Part shown: piece after piece, positions 9,901-30,780 of the stretch
How the letters are laid out: each line of letters starts with the position of its first letter
How positions within the stretch are numbered: position 1 is the stretch's first letter
From: Vitrella brassicaformis CCMP3155
Taxonomy: Eukaryota > Protista > Chromerida
Direction of reading: 5' to 3'
DNA: 64,000 nucleotides
NCBI GenBank assembly: GCA_001179505.1
Contig: CDMY01000236.1
Span: 1 to 64,000 of the forward strand
Program-made: the position numbers and the translations under genes
The notes under the pieces: model-generated
What the model was told of the DNA's origin: nothing
What the model saw: only the letters and a program-made list of their open reading frames with translations
The model's database searches: none

Positions 9901-12900
9901 ACAAATGAAATGCGATTGGATATGATGGATGATGCGATGGCTGTGCCCGTGTAGGGGGTCGGGACGCTCTCTTCTCGGCTGGTCAGCAGGGCCCAGTCGT
10001 TGGTGCAGCACCCCACGAACACACCCATGTCGGTGCCTCGCACGTGCTTCAGAGTCAGACCGGCGCAGTCCAGGGCACTGGCTGAGGTCTCGAGGATAAT
10101 CCGCTGCTCTGGATTCATTATGGTGGCCTCTTGCGGCGTAATGCCGAAGAAGGAGGCGTCGAAGAGATCGATGTGGTCCATGAAGCCTCCCTCTTTGACG
10201 TAGTAGGACCGTCCATTCAACTCGACGTTGGGGTCGTAGAGGCCCTCAACATCCCAGCGCATCTGAGGCATCTCAACAATGCAGTCCCTCTTGCCCATCA
10301 TCATGTCCCAGAAGGCCAGTGGGCCGTCCACACCGCCGGGCAGACGACAGGACAAGCCAACGACAGCGATGCTTCGCGCCCTCCGTAGGACGGTCCGGGG
10401 CGTGGCCTCGATGATGGCCTCCATCCTCGTCTTGGGCTCTCGCTCATCGCCTAGGGTGTCGGTCACGTAGGTGATGATGTCTTCGAGGGTCGGGTAGTCG
10501 AACAGGGCTGTGGCGGGGAGGCTGATGCCCACCCTCCTGGCCAAACTGTTGCGGAACTCGACAGCCCCCAAGGAGTCGATGCCCAGGTCCGAAAAGGGCA
10601 CATCCATGGGCTGCTTGCCGTCAACGCCCAACACCTCACGGGCAGTCTCAAGCGTCAGGTGCTCAACCATCTCCCGACGCCTGGCACCACTCAAGCTGCG
10701 CAGCCAGTTCTGCACGTCACGGCTTTGATGGGCTGCTTTTGCACCATCAAACTGCACAGCCTTGACGCGGGAGAAGAGGTTGTCGTAGTGCTGGCCCGAG
10801 AAGGTGCTGAGAAGGAGAGTCGTGTCAAGTGGCTGGGCCGTCACGACACCGCCGGCAGGGTGGGCGAGGAGGGAATCGAGCAGACGGAGGGCCAGCTCGT
10901 TGGAGATGGGCGGGATGCCCGCGGCCTTCATCTTGTCCATACTGCCCGCCACTGTTGCCATGCCTTGATCCGACCACGGACCCCACTGGATGCTCACCGA
11001 AGGACGCTGAACGGACCAACACGACACACACGAGACAGACAGACAGACAGACAGGCATGAGCTTCAGGCGAATGACTAACACACCCGTCACGGTCCTGCT
11101 CACTCACCTCTGACGATTGTCGATAGTCGACTAGTGCGTCCACACAGGCATTAGCAGCACTGTAGTTGCTCTGGCCTACGTTGCCCAACAGGCTCGTGAT
11201 TGACGAGAAAGCCACAAAGCGTTCGAAAGGCGACTTCAGCTGTTGTTCCACGCGGTGGATGTTCCACGCTGCCATAGCCTTGCCGACGTATGTGGTGCGC
11301 ATGGTGTCGGGTGTCTGCTGGGCGAGTGGGGCGTCCCTGAGCGCGCCGGCGGCGTGGAAGACGTGTGAGATCCGAAGGCCTTCCTGCTCCAGGCCCGTCA
11401 TGACCTCAAGCACACTGGTCTCGATTCCGACGTCGCAACTCATGGCCCTCACAGTTGTCCTGGACTGCTGCAGCCGTGTCCATCGGTCCATCGCCGACTC
11501 GTCGGGCGCACCTCGCCGTGAGAGGAGAAGGATGTGGTGCGCGCCTTGCTCGACCAGCCACTCGGCCACCACCAGGCCCAGCGCGCCTGTGCCGCCCGTG
11601 ATGACGTGCACGCCCCGCTGGCCCACCACAGATGCATCCGTGGCCGTGTCGACGGGGCTGGGGATGTTGACGATGACCTTGCCGATGTGCTGGGCTTGCT
11701 GCATGAAGCGGAATGCCGCTGTGAGGCCGGTGGTCTTGTCGCTGCTGTAGATGTCGAAGTTGCAGAGAGGGATTGGCTGGATGCGCTGCCCCTCTGCCAG
11801 AGTGCTGATCTCGTCCAGGAGCTGGCCAAACCACTGGGGGCGGTCCCCGATCATGTGGTCAAGGGCCACTACCGCGTACTGCACGTCGGGCCGCACACTC
11901 TCCATGTGCTCCTCGGTCCAGATGCCTCGTTTGCCCAGCTCGACGAAGCGGCCGTTGTGCTCTAAGAACTCCAGTGAGGCCGGGATGTAGTCGTCGATGA
12001 GGGAGTTGAGCACCACGGTGGCGAGACCTCCACTGGCAGTGAGGCTCTGCATCTCCTGCTTGAACTGTGAAGCGTCACGTGACGTTGCGATGAATGCGAT
12101 GCCCATCTCCCGAAGGAAGTCTTGCTTCTTGGCCGATCCCGCTGTGGCAATCACGTCCGCCCCCACTCGTCTGCAGTACTGGATGGCGGCGAGCCCCACT
12201 CCACCAGTGGCCGCATGAATCAACACACGGTCGCCCCGGACCACCTTAGCCGCGTCACGCAAAGAATACTCGACCGTGGCGAAGACGCTGGGCAGCGAGG
12301 CGGCAGCGCTGAAGGACCAGCCGGACGGCATGCGAGCCAGAGTCCACTCGCTCGTCGTCGCGTAGGTCTTGAGGCACCCAGGGGAGACGCCGTAGACGCT
12401 GTCACCCACCTTGAACCGCCCGTCTGTGTGGTGGGCGGTGCTGACCCGGACCACCGTCCCCGAACAGTCGCCCCCGGGTGGTCCAGGGTCACCGGGATAC
12501 AGCCCCATGACATTGAGGACGTCACGGAAGTTCAGACCGATGGCACGGATCCGAACCTCCACTTGGTCAGCCGACAGGTCGGCGGCGCGGGCCTCTTGTG
12601 GCATCGGCTGGAGGAAGAGGTTGGAGATGGCCCCTCGCTCGGACATGACCACCTGGATAGGGCCCCTCTGCCGGATCCTGCTCGCCCGTATCCTCGGGAT
12701 GAGAGTGCTGCCCTGCCGCCCACACACTTCCATCTCGTCTGACTGCTGAAGCAGGTCCGGCAGGGATTCTCTCGTCAGCTCATCGACGTCGACACATGCG
12801 ATGCTGTTCGACACGCCCGTTTCCATCTCACACTCGAGGCGAGCAGACCGCGCGAGGCCCCACAAGCCGCCATGGACAGGCAAGCCGTCGAAGCTCGTCG

Positions 12901-24440: not shown

Positions 24441-25883
24441 ATGTCGGCCTCTTCATCAGCCGGGCAGGAGCCACAGCCACCACAGCAGCAGGAGATGAAG
24501 ATAGAGAAGGTGGAGGCCCGCTTCCCGCCCAACACCAACAGTGCGACCAAGCGGCTCGTCCAGGGCATCATGCGCCGCACAATCACACCTGACGGCGTCC
24601 GGCAGCTCGTCCGCAAGGGGGCCAACCCTGCCGTCTGCATCGACCTCATCGACCTGGATGATCATGAGGAGTATCGGCTGCGTGTGTGTCTGCTGTCATT
24701 GGCCATCGACGACTGGAGCACTCCCACGGCACTCGAGGCCTTCATAGCTGTGGACCACAGCGGTGCACGGCTGGCGCTGCCGCTGTGGCCATCGCGTGGG
24801 ACGCAAGCGGCCATCCTGTCGGCTCTCATCCAGGAGGGCGTCGGGCTCAATGGGCCACCCAAGCCATCATCACCCACGCACGTCGAGACCACCAGGATCA
24901 CCATTGATGCATCAGCACGTCCTGGACGGATCACCAACGCTATGGCTCCCATCGAGGTGGCGGTGTGGGCAGGCAATGTGACGGCGGTCAAGACCCTCGT
25001 GGCCAACGGGGCGGCTCTGCAGCAAGGGCGGCCGCTGGCCTCCCTGCGAGATGGAGTGCGTTCCAGCGAGCAGTACGAGGCGGCCCTGATGGCCATCTAC
25101 ACCTACCTCGTCAAGCTCGACCCCTCCCTCTCCACCGAGGCGACGGCCAGTGACTGGAATGTCATCCATTCGGCAGCCAGTGCCGGTCCCATCTACTCGG
25201 AGGCCTTCATCCGCAGCTACCTGCAGCTGATGATGGACAACGGCGCCAGCATCACGGCCGCACAGCAGCCGCCGATGTTTCAGCCCCTGCATCGAGCAGC
25301 GTCCTCTTCGTCCCATCACGTCATCGAGTGGCTATGTCAACACCTCAGCCCCGCAGACATCAACACAGCCAGAGGGGGAGGAGTCCACCGGACGGCTTTG
25401 GGCATCGCTGCCCGCAGGGTCGCCCTCTGGCAGAGTCGACCCCCGTCCGAGCAGCGTGATGAGATGGTCAGCGGGATGCAGCGGGCCATCCGCACGCTGC
25501 TGACATCAGGAGCAGCCATCGACATGGTGCAGACGCCACAGCAGCTGCCACCCAACGCCGGGCAGATCTACCGAGCGGCGCACGGTGTGGTGTTGGCCGA
25601 GTACCTCACCGTGCTCAACGACGAGCTGCCGCAGGCCGTCATGGACGGCGTCAACGGCGCCCTCAGCCCCCAGCGTGACGCAGCCAACATGCTGACGCGG
25701 CTGCTGCCCCTCGCCCGCCCCTCCCCACCCGCCAACCCCACTGAGCCATCCACTGCTGCTGCAGCACATGCCCCTGCTGCCCCCTCCCCCTTCGCCATCA
25801 CGGATGCGACGGCCCAGGTGGCCTGGAAGATCGGCGCCTTTTTGCACGAGCCAGAGGCCGTCGACACACGGCGGGGGACATAG
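24441..25883 (+). pseudogene. Ankyrin-repeat protein, N-terminal part, truncated by transposon insertion
   Basis: Intronless 480-aa ORF with ankyrin-like repeats (APIEVAVWAGNVTAVKTLVANGA; QPLHRAASSSSHHVIEWL). The stop codon lies inside the element's left TIR. Confidence 0.85.
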
Positions 25884-28759
25884 AGTGAAAGGACATATTG
25901 TAAAAATCGATCGAATGAAGGCGATTTTTTCAAATTTTCAGCCATCATGTGGGAAGAACTGATCGAAATCGAAGCCAAAATCCAGCGGACTTTTTGAATC
26001 ACGCCTTAAAAGCTGATCGAAATCGGGCCTGGCCGAGGGCATGCGAAGTTTTTTTTTCAGTGCAACGCTGCATTCACGTTGTTAGGTGGCGGAGCTTGTG
26101 ATGTTCTTGCCACTGTGCTTCGAACATGAATGATATCCATCGCCAGATGCGAGCTGCAGAGACTGAAGCTCGCAGGTGGCAGCTTCATAGAAGTGTAGAT
26201 CTGTCGCCCCCCTTGTTTGATTCTTCGCTCCCACGCCATGGGCAAACAACAGAAAGGAAAGGGAGCGAAGAGGCGCGCTGCCAGCCCACCTGCCAATGAT
26301 GACGAGGAGAAGGAGGAGAAGAAGCACAAGATGGCATCGCAGAAGGATGAGGATGTGCCGATGACGGCACGCGAGGAACATCAAAAACTCAAGAAGTGGA
26401 CGTGGAGTCCAGAGATCTACGACTACGAACGGCGGAGGATGACCCCCGCGTTTGCGCAGAGGCAGGGGCCATTCACGTGGAGGGGGGGGGGGAGTGGATT
26501 GACTGCGCCTGCGGCCAGCCACTGTTGCAAGACGGGTCTGAAAGGCGGCATCGGGCAGCTCAACGATAGGCGTTCGGCCCACCAGAGGTCCGCGAGTTGA
26601 ATGCCCACAAGACATGGCGGCTGAAGCAGAGAAGGTATGCGGCCACTGAGCAGCACGTGGGTTGGGTGTCTGCACGTTCTTTCTCTCTGTGTATTACCCT
26701 TCTCAGGCTCGACAGGAGCGTCAGCAGAGGCGGGCCGGGGGCGAGGACGTGCCATCCCCCAGCCGCGCGGACGAGAGGGCGAGGATCGAAGAGGAGATCC
26801 GCTCCGAGCGTCCCCCACCCAAGCCCGCACCAGCTGCCTGTCAGCTCATCTCTGGTTTCTTCAGCAAAGGCAATAGCGGTACGCACGGACAAACCAACAT
26901 GGCACAGACACCAACAGTGACTAATGTGTTTGGTTCTGCTGGTGTATCTGTTGGTATGCAGTTAAGTCAAAGGGTAGACGTCACAGCCACCGTCCTCTTC
27001 TTCACGGGTCTGCGGTGCATGTCGTACATGACGCGAAAGGTGCGTGCATGTGTGCATTGCTGTGTTGCTGATTTGTGTGCGAAGGGATGTGTGCGTGTGT
27101 GTGTGTTTGTGTGTGTGTCTGTGTGTGATGCAGGACTTCAGCCCAGGCCTGTGCGTGGTGCTGTGTGGCGTGGCGTTCAGCATCCTGACGCGTGTGCAGG
27201 GCCTGCACGAGATCACCCTCGTCAACACCGTCATGTGTCTGGTGTCCAACATGTTCATCATCGTCCGCGATGACATCACCAACCCTGACCACGCCACCAC
27301 GATGGGCCTGGAGTTGCAGTTCGGATACCTGCGGCCGATCATGAACAGCAAGGGTTTAGGGTTAAGGGTTCATGTCCATCTACTTCCCCTGTTCATTCGC
27401 GACGACTTGCTTACAGGTGAGAATACGACGCACATCCACAGAGACAGATAGACAGACAGACAGACAGACAGGCTGATACCCCCACACGCATGTGCATCCA
27501 TCCATCCATCCATCCATCCATTTGTCGTGTCTGTGGCTATGTGTGTGCACAGGGAAGACGAAGTCGTATTTCGGTAACGAGAAGCTCTGTAGTTCAGAAA
27601 ATGGTCAGCTGCAACACAGGGCACATGTGCAACACAGACACATGCATTGTGCACAGAGTCGCCTCCACTCATGTGTGTGTGTGGTTCTTTTGTTAGTTGC
27701 GTGAGGTTGGTGAGGAGCGGGCGACGCCCCTTGTGCTGGCCACCTTCTCCAGGAAGTGGAAGAAGAACAGGGGAGGCGGGTGTGCCGGAAAATGGGAGCA
27801 GCTGCATCCGATGAAGGTGCCATCCGAGAACGAGATTCTGGCTCAGGTCAAGGCCAACGACAACACACCCGTCGGCAGCCAGGTCACCGAGTATCGTGCC
27901 CTTGTCACACTGCCACCCACCATCCATCACAACACGACACCACACGCGACACCCACACATTCTTGCATTCATCCATCGTCGATGTTTGCCTTGTCTGTTT
28001 CGTTGACGTGCAGGGTGGAGCTGACTCGGCTGCAGCACCGGTCCGTCTACGAGCCAGTGACGACAGGCGAGTCCAGCAGCTGGTGTTGTATGTGCCGTGC
28101 GCCGACTTTGCGATTGTCGACTCAGTCGGCTGGGAGGGCTTTGACTCGGACGCGGCCACATTGGTAGGGCATGAACACGGACCAGACACGTCAAGCGTTA
28201 ATGTCTGCTTCCTTGCCGTTCTGGATGTGTCTACGGCCTCAGGATGATTGACTAGCTCCGTCCTTCCACTTTGCAGGACTAGATGGGAGACTGGATGGGG
28301 TCCGTATGAGTGGCTGTGTGGCTGACTGTGTGGTGGGCCGTCTGTCTGTCTGTCTGTCTCTGGATGGATGGATGGATGCATAGCCGCAGACACGACATAT
28401 GAATGGATGGATGGATGGACGTGTGTGTGGGGGTATCTGTCTGTCTGTCTGTGTGTCTGTGTGTCTGTGACTTGTTGATAGTCATAGTTGATAGCAGCTG
28501 GGAGGGAAGACTCACAATCGCATATGATTCACCGCACTGCTTCAAGAACACATGTCTCACGTCCCCCCAATCCATAGAACTACCCAGACAGGCTACATCG
28601 GCACTCACGAGGCTATCTACAATCATACTTGAAAAGTGGATCGAAATCGAAAGGCTTCGGCAGGGATGGAGGATGATAGTAAGAGATCGATCGAATCGAA
28701 AGGCTCACAGACATATTATATGATACCTCTTTCGATTCCTCTCTATGTCCCCCGCCGTG
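25867..28759. mobile_element. 2893-bp TIR DNA transposon of unclassified superfamily, probably non-autonomous
   Basis: Perfect 19-bp TIRs CACGGCGGGGGACATAGAG (25867-25885) and CTCTATGTCCCCCGCCGTG (28741-28759), flanked by TCGACA at 25861-25866 and 28760-28765. An alternative reading is a 20-bp TIR with a 4-bp CGAC duplication. Removing the element restores the host ORF. Confidence 0.92.
26238..28247 (+). pseudogene. Degenerate intron-containing gene inside the transposon (possible transposase relic)
   Basis: Charged/basic N-terminus, CAC..H motif, poly-G frameshift and in-frame stop in exon 1, and a later exon ...TTMGLELQFGYLR. The frames cannot be joined into one intact product. Confidence 0.45.
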
Positions 28760-28765
28760 TCGACA

Positions 28766-29130
28766 CCATCACCCTCGGGCAGCCCGTGTTGGCCAACCGC
28801 ATCAAGAGGGCCATGCAGCACTTCGTCAAGTGCGCAGCCACCAAGACGGCCGGCAATCAGGAGGTCATCGGCCCCATGGCCAATGTGGGCGGCCGGGTGG
28901 TGCGGGTGCCCCTCCAGTGCTTCGCCATCAGAGAGGGGACGAGTGTGCGCCGGTTGGGTCTGCGTGAGGTGGTGCACAGGGCTCGGCTGGACGAGGCGGC
29001 CCGGTATGGGCTGACTGGTGTGGTCAAGGGCTTCAAGAGCCACCTAGGGAATGACGACTGTCAGCTCGGTTGGGGTCAGTTGGGGTGGGTCAATGAGATC
29101 GGCCTATTCCAGCCGCTGGGCATCAACTAG
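28766..29130 (+). pseudogene. Ankyrin-repeat gene, C-terminal part after the transposon
   Basis: In frame with 24441-25866 once the element and one TSD are removed (...HEPEAVDTITLGQPVLANRIKRAMQHF...); 1791 nt, 596 aa. Confidence 0.88.
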
Positions 29131-29694: not shown

Positions 29695-30780
29695 CTAGCT
29701 GACTACGCAGCACTTCTCCATCTCTATGAGCTCGAATGACCGCAGCAACCGCCGGAGCGAAGGCATCGTCACGGGAAAGCACTCGTCCATCCGTGCCTCA
29801 TAATCAGCAGCGGAACGTGCAGGCGACTCGGTCGTGATCAGGTGCATGCTGCCACCCGAGATCAACAGCCAAGCGGCGACAGTGTCGCCTGGTCGAAAGC
29901 CGCTCACAACCACAAGATGCAGGGCAGTTGGATTTGCAGCATTTAGATCCCCGCCGTCTTCCAAACAGTCGACCGCGATGCCCAGCTGCTCCGGGATGTC
30001 GTCTGTGATCAGCGACCGATACCGCTCACCCGTCTCGTCGATCTGTGCATTAAAAATGACCGGGTGCTGATGGGTCCAGTCGAAACAGATGTTGTGCAGC
30101 AGATACGACGAGAAAGTGCGGTACAACCCTCCACCCGCGCGGATGACCGGATCTCCTCTCTTGTAGCCCTCAGCGTAGGGGTGGCCGCCCGGCAGCTCAC
30201 CCAAAGGCACCACGTCAAAAGTGTGGTAGTGGGTGCCGATCCAGTAGTCGCCGCCATCGGCCTGGTCCACAGGCTCCACAGCCAGGGAATCTCCTCGGAA
30301 TGTCAGTTGGTGGCCGATCGCCCTGAGGATGGCCATTGCAAATGGCAATCTGCGGAAGCCCCACACGCTGTTGGGCACCGAGAGCACCAGCGGCAGGTCG
30401 GTGGCGGCATTGGCCATCCCATGGATGGCCGCTAGTCTGATGAACTGCCCGATAAACCGCCACCCATCAATGCCCTGCCCAAAGAAGTAGACGGTCTTGA
30501 AGGCCCCCTCCAGGTCACTGACGGTCAAAAATAAGGCATCCTGCAGGCCCCGACGGCTCAACGTCTCCTCTATATGCTGCTGGACGAGCCTCAGCATCGT
30601 GTCCACATCATCAGGGGAGCCATCGGTGATCTGTGAGTGGAGAGTGTGGCGCTGCCGGCTGTCTGTCGACATGGCCATGGCAGCGGCCTTCTTGATTGTG
30701 AGCGTGAGGAGGGATGGGAGGGGAGGAGGGCCCGGGGGCTCGCGATTGACATGCTGAGCGGGATGAGGCCGGGACGCCAT
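29695..30780 (-). CDS. Intronless hypothetical protein (361 aa)
   Basis: Long ORF with natural globular composition and coding-like codon use; no recognised domain. Confidence 0.7.
   Translation of the reverse strand: MASRPHPAQHVNREPPGPPPLPSLLTLTIKKAAAMAMSTDSRQRHTLHSQITDGSPDDVDTMLRLVQQHIEETLSRRGLQDALFLTVSDLEGAFKTVYFFGQGIDGWRFIGQFIRLAAIHGMANAATDLPLVLSVPNSVWGFRRLPFAMAILRAIGHQLTFRGDSLAVEPVDQADGGDYWIGTHYHTFDVVPLGELPGGHPYAEGYKRGDPVIRAGGGLYRTFSSYLLHNICFDWTHQHPVIFNAQIDETGERYRSLITDDIPEQLGIAVDCLEDGGDLNAANPTALHLVVVSGFRPGDTVAAWLLISGGSMHLITTESPARSAADYEARMDECFPVTMPSLRRLLRSFELIEMEKCCVVS

Follow-up and report, generated by a model that had tools for sequence, protein, structure and literature searches.

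We analysed the first 64,000 nucleotides of contig CDMY01000236.1 (C236) of the chromerid Vitrella brassicaformis CCMP3155, referred to below as the window (C236:1-64000). Within it an ankyrin-like gene is split by a DNA transposon bounded by terminal inverted repeats (TIRs) and a target-site duplication (TSD). The original prediction for this locus described a young transposon that fits no superfamily. That this is a genuine insertion of a TIR transposon is confirmed: inverted termini are present and paralogues of the split gene carry the empty site. The absence of a fitting superfamily, on the other hand, rested on misread ends. We consider it likely that the element is a divergent P-like TIR transposon, namely an internally deleted and frameshifted copy of a small cut-and-paste family that landed in an ankyrin-like gene. 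All genome searches reported here covered an assembly of 72,700,666 bp in 1,064 scaffolds.

Insertion site and element boundaries

The insertion and the two halves of its host gene comprise the following features (window positions):

24441-25867, + strand: 5' part of the host gene, ankyrin-like (open reading frame (ORF) with weak Pfam Ank/Ank_2 matches); its last 8 bases are the left TSD copy
25860-25867: left TSD copy, 8 bp, GTCGACAC, present once in the paralogues
25868-25885, + strand: left TIR, 18 nt, ACGGCGGGGGACATAGAG, starting with ACGG
28741-28758, - strand: right TIR, 18 nt, reading CTCTATGTCCCCCGCCGT on the forward strand
28759-28766: right TSD copy, 8 bp, GTCGACAC
28767-29130, + strand: 3' part of the host gene with the stop codon, contiguous with the 5' part in the paralogues

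The whole element thus spans 25868-28758 (+ strand) and is 2,891 bp long and non-autonomous. Both 18-nt TIRs are perfect, and the order at the junctions is GCC GTCGACAC / ACGGCGGGGGACATAGAG ... CTCTATGTCCCCCGCCGT / GTCGACAC CATC. These boundaries are fixed because four paralogues of the host gene (one on C255, three on C450) carry the empty site: in each of them left and right flanks adjoin directly, and the 8-mer is there only once. Two of the four are intact, with frames of 596 and 587 amino acids that read ...HEPEAVDTITLGQ... or ...HEPEAIDTIILGQ.... Joining 24441-25867 to 28767-29127 in the window likewise restores one frame of 596 codons (...EPEAVD/TITLGQP...), and both halves are stop-free, just as had been predicted. 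The insertion lies within an exon of this ankyrin-like gene, which exists in several copies.

A TSD of 6 bp (TCGACA) with CAC...GTG ends and TIRs of 19 bp had been proposed for this insertion. A genome search with the 19-mer shows that the base preceding ACGG is C, G or A in different copies, followed by 18 constant bases. Because this base varies among copies it belongs to the flank, and the constant part of the TIR is the 18 nt starting from ACGG. The variable flanking base and the empty sites together rule out the 6-bp TSD; the direct repeat measures 8 bp. The apparent CAC...GTG ends arise from the outer bases of the TSD, a leading G and a trailing C, which were absorbed into the TIR.

Other insertions of the family give the same picture. 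A perfect 8-bp TSD is present in six of them: the window copy, C593/C377 (GCCATCCC, left end on C593 and right end on C377), C1033/C574 (CGCTAGTG, left end on C1033 and right end on C574), C19 (CTGAGTGC), C541 (the C19 duplicate, carrying the same TSD) and C811 (TCACCAAG). At C757 the two copies agree at 7 of 8 bases. Two of the six perfect TSDs, those of the window and of C593/C377, were verified against empty paralogous sites; in the second case the left flank on C593 and the right flank on C377 share exactly 8 bp when placed on a paralogous gene adjoining the C77 element that is described below.

Directly inside both TIRs lie clusters of a short motif:

25905-26025, + strand: left cluster of ATCGAA / GATCGAAATCG, candidate transposase-binding sites
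28639-28738, + strand: right cluster of ATCGAA, four forward and one reversed

Of the ATCGAA core there are four copies in the first 150 bp of the element and five in the last 120 bp, four of these forward and one reversed; the remainder of the element holds a single further copy. The longer GATCGAAATCG is found exactly three times in the 64-kb window (25961, 26015 and 28639), each time in the subterminal parts of the element. These counts bear out the predicted clustering at both ends, with the sites themselves being candidates for transposase binding.

The designation of the host as an ankyrin gene is weakly held. Pfam Ank scores 22.7 bits, above its cut-off of 21.1, whereas Ank_2 remains below its cut-off (26.0 against 27.3). 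The paralogues are 71-85% identical over an 868-base flank query and 89-93% identical in the 300 bases at each side of the site. At least seven paralogues (71-85% DNA identity) are found, on C255:71916-72786, at three C450 loci, at two C248 loci and at C236:98570-99270, the last of which shares its contig with the window but lies beyond it. They include intact copies of 596 or 587 amino acids as well as truncated ones.

A small multi-copy family

The genome search with the TIR returned further TIR-bounded copies and thereby defines a multi-copy family in this chromerid. Exact matches to the 14-nt TIR core number 19 in the genome and fall into three groups. Window-type copies number about four (C236, C593/C377, C1033/C574 and C538); most are broken by scaffold gaps, and where assembled they are 95-99% identical to the window copy.

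Next to these there is a subfamily of 489-bp miniature inverted-repeat transposable elements (MITEs) in three to four copies, with 86-94% mutual identity:

C19:823-1311
C541:51823-52269
C757:22744-23241
C811:17601-18088

The flanks of the C19 and C541 copies are identical in opposite orientation, so this locus was duplicated. The MITEs share the 14-18-nt TIR and the 8-bp TSDs, and their subterminal repeat is of the GTCGGTT type, not ATCGAA. This difference suggests either a second transposase variant that is now missing or a relaxed recognition of the subterminal sequences.

One-ended copies were found at C77, C1000, C377:9145, C182 and C353. For C77, C1000, C377:9145 and C182 a search for a second TIR, using relaxed TIR matching together with TSD matching, gave no partner end, and they are therefore taken as one-ended relics.

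Two window-type copies break off abruptly and enter unrelated sequence, namely the C593 copy (L054 1497-2308) after element position 981 and the C1033 copy (L057 5349-5681) after element position 86. Both break points adjoin N gaps, and the diverging C593 stretch is rich in CGACCGA-like repeats. These breaks may be nested insertions or scaffold misjoins.

Another observation concerns the surroundings of the copies. At three loci (window 29695-30780 on the - strand, L048 7245-8093 on the + strand and C593:12-496) a member of a multi-copy ORF family of about 280-360 amino acids, with no Pfam match, adjoins a copy of the element, and the C593/C377 insertion sits within such a member. This adjacency may reflect survival of the element in islands of fast-expanding gene families, or a target preference.

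The probable transposase gene and its relatives

Inside the window copy we find the remnants of a multi-exon gene, which can be read by comparison with the longer relative on C77:

26239-26640, + strand: exon 1 remnant, N-terminal Cys/His-rich region (tblastx against the single-frame C77 ORF)
26695-26910, + strand: exon 2 remnant, splice supported by the transcript-derived ORF P0025
26959-27039, + strand: exon remnant ending in ...MSYMTRK, with a GT donor at 27040
27134-27352, + strand: exon with the third catalytic region, conserved Glu in ...GLELQFGYLR
27540-27590, + strand: short exon remnant, GKTKSYFGNEKL
27700-27906, + strand: C-terminal exon remnant, 68% amino-acid identity to C77
28003-28151, + strand: last exon remnant; compared with C77 the frame shifts near 28092

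The exon at 27134-27352 is 78% identical to C77 and matches the profile of the protein family described below at positions 394-452 (hmmsearch, E 9e-15). This is the only part of the profile matched by the window copy, which has kept the third catalytic region (E) as its sole one. Two segments of C77 of approximately 1.5 kb each (L048 5929-4376 and 3700-2200) are missing from it. In exon 1 the homology alternates between two frames with at least three frameshifts, against a single open frame of 131 codons in C77. A run of about 12 G at window positions 26480-26492 coincides with one of these frame changes. It may represent a homopolymer length error in the assembly; a neighbouring frameshift is found in the transcript-derived ORF as well. 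Furthermore, two inverted microsatellite-like arms, (AGAC)n(ATCC)n at 27444-27513 and (GGAT)n(GTCT)n at 28399-28468, flank the last two exon remnants. The arms are 70 nt long and 87% complementary, and also occur in the C574 and C377 copies.

Transcript data inform on the history of the window-type copies. P0025, from a public protein collection (MMETSP in the case of P0001), agrees with the C593 copy at 98% identity and has had a 74-nt intron removed, so window-type elements are transcribed and spliced. The same ORF shows the exon 1 frame problem and the large deletion of the window-type copies. Given these shared defects, the subfamily descends from a progenitor that was already defective, and its at least four insertions were made in trans.

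The original prediction called for a search for a longer, autonomous partner. The C77 relative is the only longer copy. It runs from L048 1232 to about 7100 (approximately 5.9 kb), in inverted orientation with respect to the window copy. Its gene measures 4,893 bp from the start of exon 1 to the end of the last exon, and its coding blocks show 68-77% DNA identity and 48-78% protein identity to those of the window. A longer partner therefore exists, but it has one TIR only and carries Asn in place of the second catalytic Asp (see below). The C77 copy is flanked by a 55-bp direct repeat that is 89% identical (L048 1175-1229 and 7094-7148, or C77:4174-4228 and 10093-10147); this repeat forms part of a local tandem repeat (about 60 bp).

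All protein searches with C77 were based on single stop-free ORFs. With a 268-residue ORF (L048:3780-4583, minus strand) phmmer yields 24 matches among 1.84 billion cluster representatives. Leaving aside a Vitrella transcript ORF, the matched proteins are 580-1,128 residues long and stem from the transcriptome of Siedleckia nematoides (EukProt) and from marine metagenome/ENA data. A word-index homologue search with the family alignment returned the query itself only, and two scans of metagenomes for the genomic context of the relatives found nothing. The family alignments (A1 and A2) contain four invariant or near-invariant positions or groups: D in IDxTKV, DG in AxDGxSxD, D..H..K in DxNHxAKNxR, and E in EPxEHxFGxLR, which is followed by REFTV. 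This set is a DDE triad with a DxxH motif.

C77 matches the family profile collinearly over four stop-free pieces in different frames:

D1 region: family profile E 3e-6; hhalign E 2e-5
D2 region: family profile E 0.005 and 0.04, in two short ORFs
DxxH through E and REFTV: family profile E 2e-34; hhalign probability 99.6, E 2e-23

The gaps between the pieces are about 80 nt, as expected for short introns, except that the first (about 62 nt) is too short for a clear intron. D1, DxxH..K and E are kept in C77, but NN stands where the second catalytic motif has its invariant DG (Asp to Asn). A six-frame search of the genome with the family profile hits C77 and the window only, and searches with two C77 exons hit only C77, C236 and C593. 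Exon 1 of C77 carries a CxCx3Cx9Hx4H pattern. When the N-terminal Cys/His region and the ITSFF motif were compared to a full-length family member (BLASTP), the outcome was not significant (E 7.7 and 0.29).

Proposed placement beside P elements and alternatives

The superfamily was assessed at the level of protein fold. An AlphaFold2 model was built for P0003, a Siedleckia transcript protein, from an alignment of 25 sequences (mean predicted local distance difference test score 71.5, about 85-95 at residues 10-330). Foldseek matches this model to the transposase of the Drosophila P element (6pe2_A/6p5a_A) with E 6e-7 and probability 1.00. VIA-align yields against 6p5a_A a Z-score of 16.9 and a root-mean-square deviation of 3.5 over 298 residues (model 5-335 versus chain 218-569). 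In the predicted model the match takes in the helical insertion domain together with the two parts of the RNase H domain that it separates. In a search independent of Foldseek, P transposase is the single outlier among 48,161 representative chains, the next best Z-score being at most 8. The other targets score far lower:

ISCth4: Foldseek E 0.11; VIA-align Z 6.9-8.0
RAG1: Foldseek E 0.18; VIA-align Z 5.6-7.1
Hermes (hAT): Foldseek E 0.04; VIA-align Z 5.4-5.6
Transib: Foldseek E 0.1; VIA-align Z 4.8-6.9

C77 is tied to the fold-matched family by hhalign (99.6%). A language-model look-up with the C77 D1 exon points to TNP-like_RNaseH_N clusters (PF21787, 0.88), which we treat as a lead only. Since the protein family carries a P transposase fold, the element can be classified at the fold level. 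The claim that it fits no superfamily is not supported: with the ends corrected, the 8-bp TSD suits both P and hAT.

P elements have 8-bp TSDs and TIRs accompanied by subterminal binding sites, and many of their copies are internally deleted and non-autonomous (PMC7776569). Both P and hAT elements typically make TSDs of about 8 bp, and the two share the DxxH motif with Kolobok and MuDR (PMC3706591). The Vitrella family resembles P elements in its 8-bp TSD and in its short perfect TIRs (18 nt, compared to 31 bp in Drosophila and 13 bp in zebrafish Pdre/THAP9). It also has subterminal repeats, ATCGAA lying within 150 bp of both ends; these are binding sites in P and candidates for the same role in Vitrella. 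Internally deleted non-autonomous copies dominate, and the transposase gene has multiple exons. To this may be added an RNase H domain that an all-helical insertion domain is predicted to interrupt (Z 16.9 to 6p5a), and a DDE triad with DxxH after the second Asp in the related family, this Asp being Asn in C77. There are differences as well. The TIR sequence of Vitrella is unrelated and starts with ACGG, its subterminal motifs are in direct orientation at the two ends, and the host is an alveolate alga.

Several results weigh against a P-like assignment. Neither THAP nor the Pfam P-type domains (Tnp_P_element, TNP-like RNase H, GBD) were detected by sequence. Ten ORFs of the C77 and window elements gave no Pfam match, including the P-type, THAP and PF05699 models; 10 family members gave none at E <=0.001, and 25 members none that was significant at E <=1 (one reached 0.19). 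Pfam did not detect a THAP domain in C77 exon 1, where the N-terminal Cys/His region is without a significant match. Among PDB sequences, nothing useful was obtained with two C77 ORFs (phmmer) or with the family profile. The fold match itself comes from the predicted model of a homologue in Siedleckia rather than from the Vitrella protein, and the comparison extends to superfamilies with solved structures, whereas Kolobok, Dada, Zisupton and Novosib are without one. The family is nevertheless filed as a very divergent relative that works like a P element, even though the sequence signatures of P membership were not found.

The strongest competitor is a separate, undescribed lineage at superfamily level, sister to P, which would carry an N-terminal DNA-binding domain of its own instead of THAP and have nothing in common with P beyond the 8-bp stagger and an ancestral architecture with a split RNase H domain. 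We regard this as unlikely, though it deserves consideration: no Pfam P-domain or THAP match appeared at any threshold tried, the structural alignment to P transposase shows only 14-15% identity, the family has its own conserved motif set, and all of its relatives were found either in a single alveolate transcriptome or among marine metagenome proteins. Against this, the Z-score of 16.9 extends across the N-terminal RNase H part, the insertion domain and the C-terminal part, with no other fold above 8. Moreover, Repbase-style superfamilies routinely hold members that are this divergent. The 8-bp TSD, finally, is the value known for P (PMC7776569).

An origin among hAT elements (Ac, hobo, Hermes), the other classic superfamily with 8-bp TSDs, is very improbable. 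Like the Vitrella family, hAT elements combine such a TSD with short TIRs, a C/DxxH motif, internal-deletion derivatives and MITEs. The window TSD also fits nTnnnnAn, which we take to be the hAT pattern, but the remaining TSDs do not fit it, and the termini lack the YARNG start that is presumably characteristic of hAT. Hermes matches the model weakly (Z 5.4-5.6 and Foldseek E 0.04, against 16.9 and 6e-7 for P). The dimerisation domain PF05699 gave no match in the ORFs. Six-frame genome searches for PF05699, which are weak across introns, and for the P-like PF21787 gave no match, but their controls were equally silent, so that they carry no information. The DxxH motif after the second Asp does agree with hAT (PMC3706591).

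Transib/RAG-like and CACTA elements have only the apparent CAC terminus in common with the Vitrella family, and this terminus results from misreading the last base of the TSD. Their TSDs are 5 bp and 2-3 bp instead of 8 bp, the Vitrella terminus is ACGG, and the fold matches to Transib and RAG1 are weak (Z 4.8-7.1).

That the multi-exon gene is captured or degenerate cargo, with the ends mobilised by an unrelated enzyme encoded elsewhere, is hardly credible: the 489-bp MITEs do share the 14-18-nt TIR while having GTCGGTT instead of ATCGAA, and the only long copy has one TIR and an Asp-to-Asn change, but the gene lies between the ends in two lineages that are 23-32% apart at the DNA level with conserved coding frames, its family has a predicted DDE transposase fold, and genome-wide matches to the family profile lie only inside these elements.

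Movement of the family and its significance

For the P-like element we propose a cut-and-paste route. A transposase supplied in trans would bind the ATCGAA-type subterminal repeats via its N-terminal Cys/His region, pair the two 18-nt ends, excise the element and join it to target strands that are staggered by 8 bp; gap repair at this stagger would then yield the TSD. In the P element itself, transposition uses guanosine triphosphate (GTP) as cofactor and donor cleavage is staggered by 17 nt (PMC7776569). The window copy is without the first two catalytic regions and has kept both ends and the clusters of candidate binding sites. It can therefore have been moved only by the enzyme of another copy.

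Perfect TIRs and TSD, the open host frame and a divergence of just 1-5% among window-type copies argue for fairly recent movement. The insertion is thus recent, as was predicted, given the perfect TSD and TIRs and the host frame that is still open. That the family is active could not be upheld. Window-type copies lack the D1 and D2 regions and are frameshifted, C77 has Asn for the second Asp and a single TIR, and no copy in the assembly is able to supply the enzyme. Without a working source the family looks recently extinct, or dependent on a copy that was not assembled. An intact copy could lie within the scaffold gaps.

The transposable element content of Vitrella amounts to only 1.5 Mb, and in the supplement of the survey hAT is missing, 'other transposase' accounts for 14 kb and unclassified class 2 sequence for 64 kb (PMC4501334). 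One unclassified class 2 family of this genome now has defined ends, an 8-bp TSD and subterminal motifs. Besides a relic of the autonomous type, its anatomy comprises two subfamilies, one non-autonomous and one of MITEs, and at the fold level the family is placed beside P elements. A protein family of 580-1,130 residues in marine eukaryotic data that is invisible to Pfam is, judging by the predicted model, probably a P-like transposase. The locus also shows how complementary bases at the two ends of a TSD can make the TIR look longer and the TSD shorter than they are, which is relevant to automated classification of transposable elements. No new mechanism of transposition is revealed; rather than an unclassifiable novelty, the element is an unusual relative of a known kind. 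More tentatively, it is possible that the Vitrella elements and their relatives in Siedleckia and marine metagenomes form an undescribed, Pfam-invisible clade with the P fold and a non-THAP DNA-binding head of its own, spread among marine alveolates and perhaps reaching an early-branching apicomplexan. If so, this would place a cut-and-paste lineage at the base of a group that is regarded as nearly free of DNA transposons.

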